A stretch of DNA of 64,000 bases. It comes from Hemiscyllium ocellatum. Lineage: Eukaryota. Positions 39,905 to 40,924 of the stretch are shown one piece after another. Location of the stretch: the NCBI RefSeq assembly GCF_020745735.1, contig NW_026867486.1, positions 62,001 through 126,000 of the forward strand, given 5' to 3'. The notes beneath the pieces were generated by a model. The model was given only the letters and a program-made list of their open reading frames with translations, did not search any database and was not told where the DNA came from. Both the position numbers and the translations under genes were made by a program. Each line of letters opens with the position of its first letter. The stretch's first letter is position 1.

Positions 39905-40924
39905 ATGGAGAAACCGTGGAAGTGTGGGGATTGCGGGAAAGGATTCCGCTCCCCCTCCGTGCTGGAGATCCACCGCCGTGTCCACACCGGGGAGCGGCCC
40001 TTCACCTGCTCCGTCTGCGGCAAGGGCTTCACCCAGTCGTCCCACCTGCTGACCCACCAGCGGGTCCACACCGGGGAGAGGCCCTTCACCTGCTCCGTCT
40101 GCGGCAAGGTCTTCTCTGACTCGTCCCACCTGCTGTCCCACCAGCGTGTCCACACCGGGGAGCGGCCCTTCACCTGTTCCGTCTGTGGCAAGGGCTTCAC
40201 CAAGTCGTCCAACCTGTTCTCGCACCAATGGGTCCACACCGAGGAGAGGCCGTTCAGCTGCTCCGTCTGCGGCAAGGGCTTCTCTCACTCGTCCCACCTG
40301 CTTAAGCACTGGCGGGTCCACACCGGGGAGCGGCCCTTCACCTGCTCCAACTGCGGCAAGGGCTTCTCTCACTCGTCTCACCTGCTCAGGCACTGGCGGG
40401 TCCACACCGGCGAGCGGCCCTTCACCTGCTCTGTCTGCGGCAAGGGCTTCACCCAGTCGTCCCACCTGCTGCAGCACCAGCAGGTCCACACCGGCGAGGG
40501 GGTCTTCACCTGCTCAGTCTGCGGCAAGGGCTTCACCCAGTCGTTCACCCTGCTGACCCACCAGCAGGTCCACACCGGGGAGCGGCCCTTCACCTGCTCG
40601 TTGTGCGGCAAGGGCTTCACTCGCTCGTCCAGCCTGCTGCGGCACCAGCGGGTCCACACCGGGGAGCGGCCCTTCACCTGCTCCGTCTGCGGCAAGGGCT
40701 TCACCCAGTCATCCAACCTGCTGCGGCACCAGCAGGTCCACACCGGCGAGGGGGCCTTCACCTGCCTGGTCTGCGGCAAGGGCTTCACCCACTCGTCCGG
40801 CCTCCAGATCCACCAGCGGGTCCACACGGGGGAACATCCTTCCGATAGACCAGAAGTGCACATAATACAGAGGAACTTCGATTATCCAGAATTAGATGAA
40901 CCAGCACGGTGGCTCAGTGGTTAG
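39905..40924 (+). CDS. Intact KRAB-less C2H2 zinc-finger protein, 11 fingers (XlCGF/gastrula ZNF-like), 339 aa
   Basis: Kozak caccATGG at 39905. [14 protein letters not shown] followed by 11 uninterrupted fingers with TGERPF-type linkers. Acceptor at 39653-39654 and upstream donor at 38850. Confidence 0.9.

Follow-up and report, generated by a model that had tools for sequence, protein, structure and literature searches.

Finger arrays with divergent interiors in the two arms of an inverted duplication carrying a Krueppel-type C2H2 gene in Hemiscyllium ocellatum

Introduction

Among the genes that encode long tandem arrays of C2H2 fingers (poly-ZF genes), paralogues that belong to lineage-specific expansions almost never have the same number of fingers, and both positive selection at helix positions -1, 3 and 6 and short gene conversions have been detected in them (PMC2604467). 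Within the species set of that study, KRAB poly-ZF genes were found in tetrapods only (PMC2604467). The coding sequences of poly-ZF genes are highly plastic among recent mouse duplicates (PMC5363842), and young mouse clusters grow by segmental duplications that take their transposons along (PMC12575710). ZNF expansions that are independent of KRAB and linked to transposons have been described across metazoans, with the FiNZ genes of cyprinids as the worked example; in that report cartilaginous fishes are mentioned 0 times (PMC10547256).

In the present study, we analysed a window of 64,000 nucleotides from the shark Hemiscyllium ocellatum (assembly GCF_020745735.1, contig NW_026867486.1, positions 62,001 to 126,000 of the forward strand), which appears to hold a cluster of finger-only (effector-less) Krueppel-type C2H2 genes. 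The mammalian KRAB-ZNF clusters on mouse Chr4 and Chr2 and human chr19 (PMC5363842, PMC12575710, PMC2604467) are alike in that segments are duplicated together with the surrounding transposons, recent paralogues are almost never the same in finger number or -1/2/3/6 'fingerprint', short conversions occur between paralogues and pseudo-arrays are scattered in the cluster. The shark locus differs from them in that no KRAB exon was found in the ORF or the window, the protein consists of fingers only, the host is a cartilaginous fish and flank and array can be contrasted within a single palindrome. The FiNZ-ZNF genes of cyprinids (PMC10547256) are likewise a KRAB-independent tandem C2H2 family that expanded in fish within transposon-rich DNA, with diversification centred on the fingers; however, they have a conserved N-terminal FiNZ domain, reported to be unique to cyprinids, whereas the shark ORF starts three residues before finger 1. 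Repression of transposons has been shown for FiNZ.

The PRDM9 minisatellite is also a tandem array of 84-nt finger units, and unequal exchange or conversion alters both the number of its units and their helix residues. Its units are near-identical outside the contact codons, whereas the shark units are 84% alike with a dS of 0.26 among them; PRDM9 has KRAB, SSXRD and PR/SET parts, whereas the shark ORF has no N-terminal domain; and PRDM9 is a case of allelic hypervariability, the shark locus one of divergence between paralogues. The comparison with PRDM9 made in a preliminary description of this DNA is a loose one, given a unit similarity of only 84% and the lack of PR/SET and KRAB parts. The shark genes are not KRAB-ZNF genes, as they have no KRAB, and are not PRDM9-like in structure; the case is one of array turnover as in lineage-specific poly-ZNF clusters, in another lineage and with no effector domain.

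Results

The architecture of the window is a large inverted duplication with arms A and A' (Table 1), between which lies a spacer of ~4 kb with a Penelope-like element (RT and GIY-YIG hits). The duplicated unit is ~13 kb long, and one tandem C2H2 finger array is present in each of the two arms. The finger array of the third copy, C, is expected just beyond 64000, outside the window; C is inverted relative to A', which has inverted copies on either side. Over the 5 kb common to A, A' and C, the three were about equidistant, with 85, 126 and 124 private substitutions, and no clear conversion mosaic was seen. Inverted arms (15689-28952 and 33016-46837) with a short spacer are the layout of a palindrome, as in the sex-chromosome palindromes with their arm-to-arm conversion, but with 2.3% mismatches and many indels the identity of A and A' is lower than the ~99.9% expected of palindrome arms. 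Across the 13-kb arms there was one private indel of at least 300 nt, which argues for a young duplication rather than an old one with homogenised flanks. A segment of ~304 nt at 36093-36400 is present in A' only and is the sole transposon-sized private indel between the arms.

Table 1. Positions in the window of the duplicated copies, the finger arrays and the related features
Feature	Position	Strand	Remark
Arm A of the inverted segmental duplication	15689-28952	-	
Arm A' of the inverted segmental duplication	33016-46837	+	
Third copy, C	58377-64000	-	direct relative to A; cut by the window end
Gene of arm A', intact ORF of 339 aa	39905-40924	+	11 C2H2 fingers and a 28-aa tail
11 finger units of exactly 84 nt, arm A'	39914-40837	+	all Cys/His ligands intact
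Divergent block, arm A'	40079-40795	+	starts at the end of unit 2, stops near base 42 of unit 11; non-orthologous to arm A
Finger array of arm A, 8 units (665 nt)	21564-22228	-	7 one-base deletions
Start codon of arm A, then a one-base insertion relative to A'	22233-22238	-	direct comparison of both sequences
Divergent block, arm A	21605-22063	-	all of units 3-7, plus unit 8 up to its middle
Run of 13 N	21213-21225		340 nt past the 3' end of the arm A array
Stretch of arm A with many small private deletions	19800-23350		surrounds the N run
Decayed 4-finger remnant array, arm A	27262-27700	+	same family
Mirror of the remnant array, arm A'	34150-34567	-	5 substitutions; deletions of 131 nt and 17 nt

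The ORF of arm A' opens with an ATG at 39905 in a strong start context (ACCATGG) and ends with the stop codon at 40922-40924. Its product begins MEKPWKC, three residues ahead of finger 1, without an N-terminal region. The C-X2-C-X12-H-X3-H spacing was found in 11 of 11 units, and TRF described the array as a repeat of period 84 with 10.2 copies, 84% matches and 0% indels. The linker between fingers is HTGERPF in 7 of 10 cases, with the variants TEERPF, TGEGVF and TGEGAF. Pfam searches of the ORF gave PF00096 (zf-C2H2) with 239 bits (cut-off 25.2; 11 stretches; E 2e-73) and PF13465 (zf-H2C2_2) with 247 bits; no domain type besides finger families, and no PF01352, was reported. By its spacing, its 28-residue period with a linker of the TGE(K/R)P type and its Pfam matches, the A' gene is a Krueppel-type tandem C2H2 (poly-ZF) gene. 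The helix residues (-1,2,3,6) of its fingers are SSVI, QSHT, DSHS, KSNS, HSHK, HSHR, QSHQ, QFTT, RSSR, QSNR and HSGI.

No PR/SET or KRAB/SSXRD part was found N-terminal to the A' array, where the ORF opens directly before the fingers. A tblastn search of the window for KRAB or SCAN exons with the N-termini of KRAB-bearing hits gave nothing below E 0.01, at the sensitivity of tblastn; its best spot (13818-13886) was weak and broken by stops, and was rejected. An exact look-up of the A' product in protein collections gave no record, and a search with the whole protein was swamped by poly-ZF proteins and contained no near-identical entry; none of the proteins of 186-593 aa in the collection was at least 90% identical to A'. 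The closest proteins by identity (59-68%) come from sharks (Pristiophorus, Heptranchias and Scyliorhinus). A 'ZFP2-like' protein of the sawshark Pristiophorus japonicus (P0084) is likewise finger-only, with the same start straight into finger 1, and is 67% identical to A' across 81% of its length; it differs in having 501 aa and other fingers, and is no orthologue of A' at the level of the array.

The 28-residue tail of the A' product runs into a SINE-like repeat. The end of the ORF and its stop codon lie inside this interspersed repeat, which has a tRNA-like head (GGTGGCTCAGTGGTTAGC) and was seen at 40908-41180 and 21476-21493 and also at 26535 and 35262; the head (GGTGGCTCAGTGGTTAGC) has 4 occurrences in the window against 0 expected by chance, and ARAGORN called no tRNA on the SINE head downstream of the A' ORF. 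The GC3 of the A' array is 93.5%, against a GC content of 49-51% in the flanks, which is compatible with frequent GC-biased conversion; it fits such a process but is not decisive. The observed/expected ratio of CpG is 0.62 in the A' array against 0.41 in the window. Three long antisense ORFs (158-201 aa) overlap the A' array at 39799-40863 on the minus strand; they follow from the G+C-rich, periodic nature of the sequence and carry no evidence of a gene.

In arm A as assembled there is no open frame through the fingers. After the deletions were stepped over, the helix residues are YSMI, QPHS, ESSK, HSSK, RSHT, HSSR, HSSR and HSGI. The ATG of arm A (22238-22236) is out of frame with the fingers owing to the one-base insertion, and the one-base indels total eight, at approximately 22235, 22060, 21983, 21945, 21895, 21824, 21656 and 21613. 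Read with the indels stepped over, arm A has no stop codon, and its Cys/His ligands and linkers are intact wherever they can be read; 5 units match the C2H2 spacing as assembled and 8 of 8 after stepping over the indels. The 7 one-base deletions in the 665 nt of the array correspond to ~4x the rate of the flanks. A protein search with the longest in-frame piece of arm A (fingers 6-7, 56 aa) gave 41 candidates, the best 68% identical. For neither array did the protein collections yield an independent sequence.

The quality of the assembly around this array was examined against the other copies. At the run of 13 N, arm A is ~140 nt shorter than A'; gaps of 13 N are insertions made by optical-map scaffolding between abutting or overlapping contigs. 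Between 19.9 and 21.3 kb, 12 small deletions are private to arm A, against 0 in A' and 0 in C (~2e-6 under equal rates). Small gaps in the two-arm comparison number 21 in arm A and 4 in A' between 19.8 and 23.3 kb and are at parity elsewhere, and arm A also carries private indels at 23.3-25.7 kb. Substitutions private to arm A stay at 5-6 per 400 nt close to the gap, as in A' and C, and the small deletions there amount to ~0.5 per private substitution. Since about one deletion per two private substitutions is seen in one copy only and brackets the gap, the zone at 19.8-23.3 kb points to a poor consensus where two contigs end, and not to evolution. The frameshifts of arm A are probably assembly or consensus errors at a contig end and not decay, and thus arm A is not callable as a pseudogene on present evidence. 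Consensus errors of the small-deletion kind do not yield 14% substitutions. Because the divergent block is flanked by A'-like sequence within 0.7 kb on one contig, the combination of an 8-unit array with an A'-like flank is very likely real in some copy. The placement and exact sequence of the arm A array are nevertheless less certain than those of A', and the 8-unit array might in truth belong to C, another copy or the other haplotype.

In a global alignment, the flanks of A and A' had 262 mismatches in 11,470 aligned columns (2.3%), with 5.3% in the worst window of 500 columns and indels of up to 304 nt; divergence was patchy along the arms (0.4-5%). The arrays were set in their best unit register (A1=A'1, A2=A'2 and A3-A8=A'6-A'11), in which the interior had 59/414 mismatches (14.3%; Fisher p = 1e-26 against the flanks). 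When each arm A unit was paired with the closest A' unit whatever its position, mismatch was 11.1% (p = 3e-17). The mismatch profile stands at 1-3% up to 40019, at 12-18% between, and at 1-3% again from 40770; the block measures ~0.46 kb in arm A and ~0.72 kb in arm A'. At the edges, A1 and A'1 differ by 4 mismatches, A2 and A'2 by 3, and A8 and A'11 by 6, all of which fall in the first 42 nt and are followed by 66 identical bases. Judged from these counts, only fingers 1, 2 and the last are orthologous between the arms, clearly so for 1 and 2.

Synonymous and non-synonymous differences were estimated by Nei-Gojobori counts on the interior unit pairs. Between A and A' the interior had dS 0.255 and dN 0.146, and different fingers within A' had dS 0.262 and dN 0.145; in the non-helix codons, dS was 0.268 for the interior and 0.21 among units within an array. 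As the interior dS equals that of paralogous fingers and the flanks differ by 2.3%, the interior is non-orthologous and is not the product of point mutation since the duplication. The block is as expected of a conversion tract in that raised divergence is bounded by low divergence and the synonymous and backbone sites stand at the paralogue level (0.255 vs 0.262), but a matching donor was not found within the window. For units A3-A7, other matches in the window were no better than 72-78%; the remnant arrays at 27.3, 34.4 and 53.2 kb, considered as donors, were rejected with an identity of at most 78%.

The nearest A' units to A3, A4, A6 and A7 have 13, 8, 12 and 9 mismatches, and unit A3 is highly distinctive and not consensus-like. 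Simple deletion of three units was rejected as an account of the arrays, since these four of the five interior units of arm A have no close A' partner. The longest exact match between the interiors is a backbone stretch of 37 nt. Within and between the arrays some units are more alike, with 4 mismatches for A'7/A'10 and 4 for A5/A'2, and the neighbours A6/A7 and A'5/A'6 have helix-coding stretches in common; in the unit sequences, local unit-to-unit copying is visible in both arrays. In fingers 1-2, 5 of the 6 changed codons are non-synonymous and 4 of the 6 lie at the contact positions -1, 2, 3 and 6 (hypergeometric p = 0.0025), an enrichment that could be due to selection or to short conversion tracts.

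These results bear on several statements of the preliminary description. Its 11 fingers in A' agree with ours residue for residue, in an intact ORF, and so do its 8 fingers in arm A, once the 7 one-base deletions are stepped over. It had held that only the last finger was the same in both arms, which is right for the four-residue signatures but not for the units as such, as fingers 1 and 2 are orthologous (4 and 3 nt differences). To call the flanks almost identical was slightly generous in view of 2.3% mismatches and indels up to 304 nt; that the arrays differ by substitutions and not by indel noise was borne out by the 14.3% mismatch of the interior against 2.3% in the flanks. The family had also been called KRAB-less, and we concur, with no PF01352 in the ORF and no credible KRAB exon in the window by tblastn. 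The tree of finger units that it proposed was run on the 19 units of A and A' by maximum likelihood, and was informative for the edges: support was obtained only for A1 with A'1 (100/100) and A8 with A'11 (99/98), while A2, A5 and A'2 grouped loosely and the remaining interior units fell into no resolved groups.

Both arms also carry a dead array of fingers from this family, which was used as an internal control. The remnant arrays of the two arms differ by 5 substitutions in ~390 nt, and both deletions are in A'. With so few changes in a dead array of the same palindrome, the finger repeat as such is not hyper-divergent here. A further short remnant of about three fingers lies at ~53000-53350 on the minus strand, about midway from A' to C, with one intact C2H2 motif at 53212-53274.

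Discussion

The block of raised divergence, its boundaries and its synonymous divergence at the level of paralogous fingers were observed directly in the two arms. To explain them, we propose that another family member served as donor in a non-allelic gene conversion or an unequal exchange that replaced ~0.46-0.7 kb inside one array, a reading based on sequence comparison to which we give slightly better than even odds (about 0.55). Exchange with something other than the partner arm is the best reading because the interior dS is 0.255 against a flank divergence of ~0.023. In the proposed course of events, a ~13-kb segment with one finger gene would have been duplicated recently in inverted orientation to give A and A', with copy C from 58.4 kb. 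After the duplication, a block of the array interior that begins where finger 2 ends and reaches halfway into the last finger would have been replaced in one copy by non-allelic homologous recombination with a family member outside the window, and unit number would have changed as well. The tract may start and end inside the array because the array units would be the only homology with distant paralogues. The result would be two genes with the same promoter side, the same fingers 1-2 and the same last finger, with 11 against 8 fingers and other recognition helices in between. Both copies may encode functional DNA-binding proteins; the change may have taken place in A or in A'.

The preliminary description had named two processes, shuffling of fingers or conversion with other cluster members. 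Shuffling of shared fingers did not hold, because A3, A4, A6 and A7 are 8-13 mismatches from any A' unit and no exact match extends beyond 37 nt. Conversion fared better in part: exchange with a sequence other than the partner is the best reading of the dS values, while no donor lies in the window, and other cluster members are its putative source. Mis-assembly of arm A, named there as a refuting outcome, had been underplayed, given a gap of 13 N only 340 nt away and a zone rich in deletions; the substitutions stand.

In this respect, the arm A array might be misplaced or misbuilt, either from reads of another copy or haplotype or as a chimeric consensus of paralogues. The run of 13 N lies 340 nt from the array with ~140 nt missing in arm A, small private deletions beside the gap number 12 against 0 and 0, and 7 one-base deletions fall in a 665-nt array at ~4x the flank rate. 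We nevertheless regard an artefact as unlikely, although it is a real concern: close to the gap, arm A has no excess of private substitutions (5-6 per 400 nt); the ~460-nt block has sequence 97-99% like A' on either side of it in a single contig; a chimeric origin would call for two switches in 0.7 kb, a span that long reads would cover; and the highly distinctive unit A3 does not resemble a consensus. Even a misplaced array would leave the finding of the same flanks with a different array true of some real copy. The eight frame-breaking indels between the ATG and the last finger could also be taken as real, with arm A a decaying pseudogene whose odd array came from relaxed constraint. This is very unlikely, as small deletions of this sort are also in excess in the non-coding flank of arm A by the gap and absent from A' and C, the stepped-over frame has no stop codon and keeps its readable ligands and linkers, and decay would not give a dS at the paralogue level.

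Another explanation is that the duplication is old and the arrays have long been separate, while conversion from arm to arm or copy to copy homogenises the surrounding 13 kb and stops at the arrays, halted by the length difference or by selection against converted arrays. Palindrome arms are known substrates of arm-to-arm conversion, and the patchy divergence of the arms (0.4-5%) would agree with it. It would need, however, ~6 kb homogenised per side; fingers 1-2 and half of the last finger would belong to the homogenised tracts, both of which would end in the array. The dead array of these arms is either homogenised or young, although its copies differ by 131 nt in length, there are almost no private transposon-sized insertions between the arms, and the three copies are about equidistant, with no clear mosaic in their shared 5 kb, all of which make an old duplication rather unlikely. 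Point mutation under positive selection at the DNA-contacting residues, together with loss or gain of three units, finds its argument in fingers 1-2, where 5 of 6 changed codons are non-synonymous and 4 are on contact positions (p = 0.0025). Short conversion tracts would give the same enrichment, as fingers differ mainly there. In the interior, the dS of 0.255, or 0.268 in non-helix codons, is 10x the flank divergence, and the arms are as far apart in backbone and linker codons as unrelated fingers are; point mutation is ruled out there by dS, and as an account of the whole pattern it is extremely unlikely. Replacement of the interior by exchange with another family member remains our preferred reading.

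A more far-reaching proposal would be a cassette system, in which the promoter-side and 3' flanks and the first and last fingers are homogenised across many copies and the inner fingers are re-assorted by conversion from a family pool at no less than 10x the rate of point mutation. The end fingers would then act as recombination anchors, and the family would provide cartilaginous fishes with a KRAB-independent, fast-evolving repertoire of DNA-recognition arrays, possibly aimed at transposons. Taken jointly, we consider these suggestions quite unlikely to be correct as they stand.

If the preferred reading is right, this is a clean within-locus case, in a cartilaginous fish not known to have KRAB-ZNF genes, of an array interior replaced by recombination and not by point mutation, with the flanks serving as a built-in clock. 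The mode of duplicating a gene and then rewriting its array is known from mammals and has been argued for metazoan ZNFs at large; should the pattern hold over the many genome copies of this unit, the mammalian mode would extend to early-branching vertebrates. The two arrays form natural protein pairs for testing the effect of finger swaps on DNA targets. For the assembly itself, the stretch at 19.8-23.3 kb is unsafe for pseudogene calls based on frameshifts. At the outer edge of the duplication, 0.7 kb of all three copies (46164-46837, 15689-16376 and 58377-59050) are ~15% diverged and mutually equidistant, and this segment probably does not belong to the duplication unit but is an older repeat that lies at its edge.
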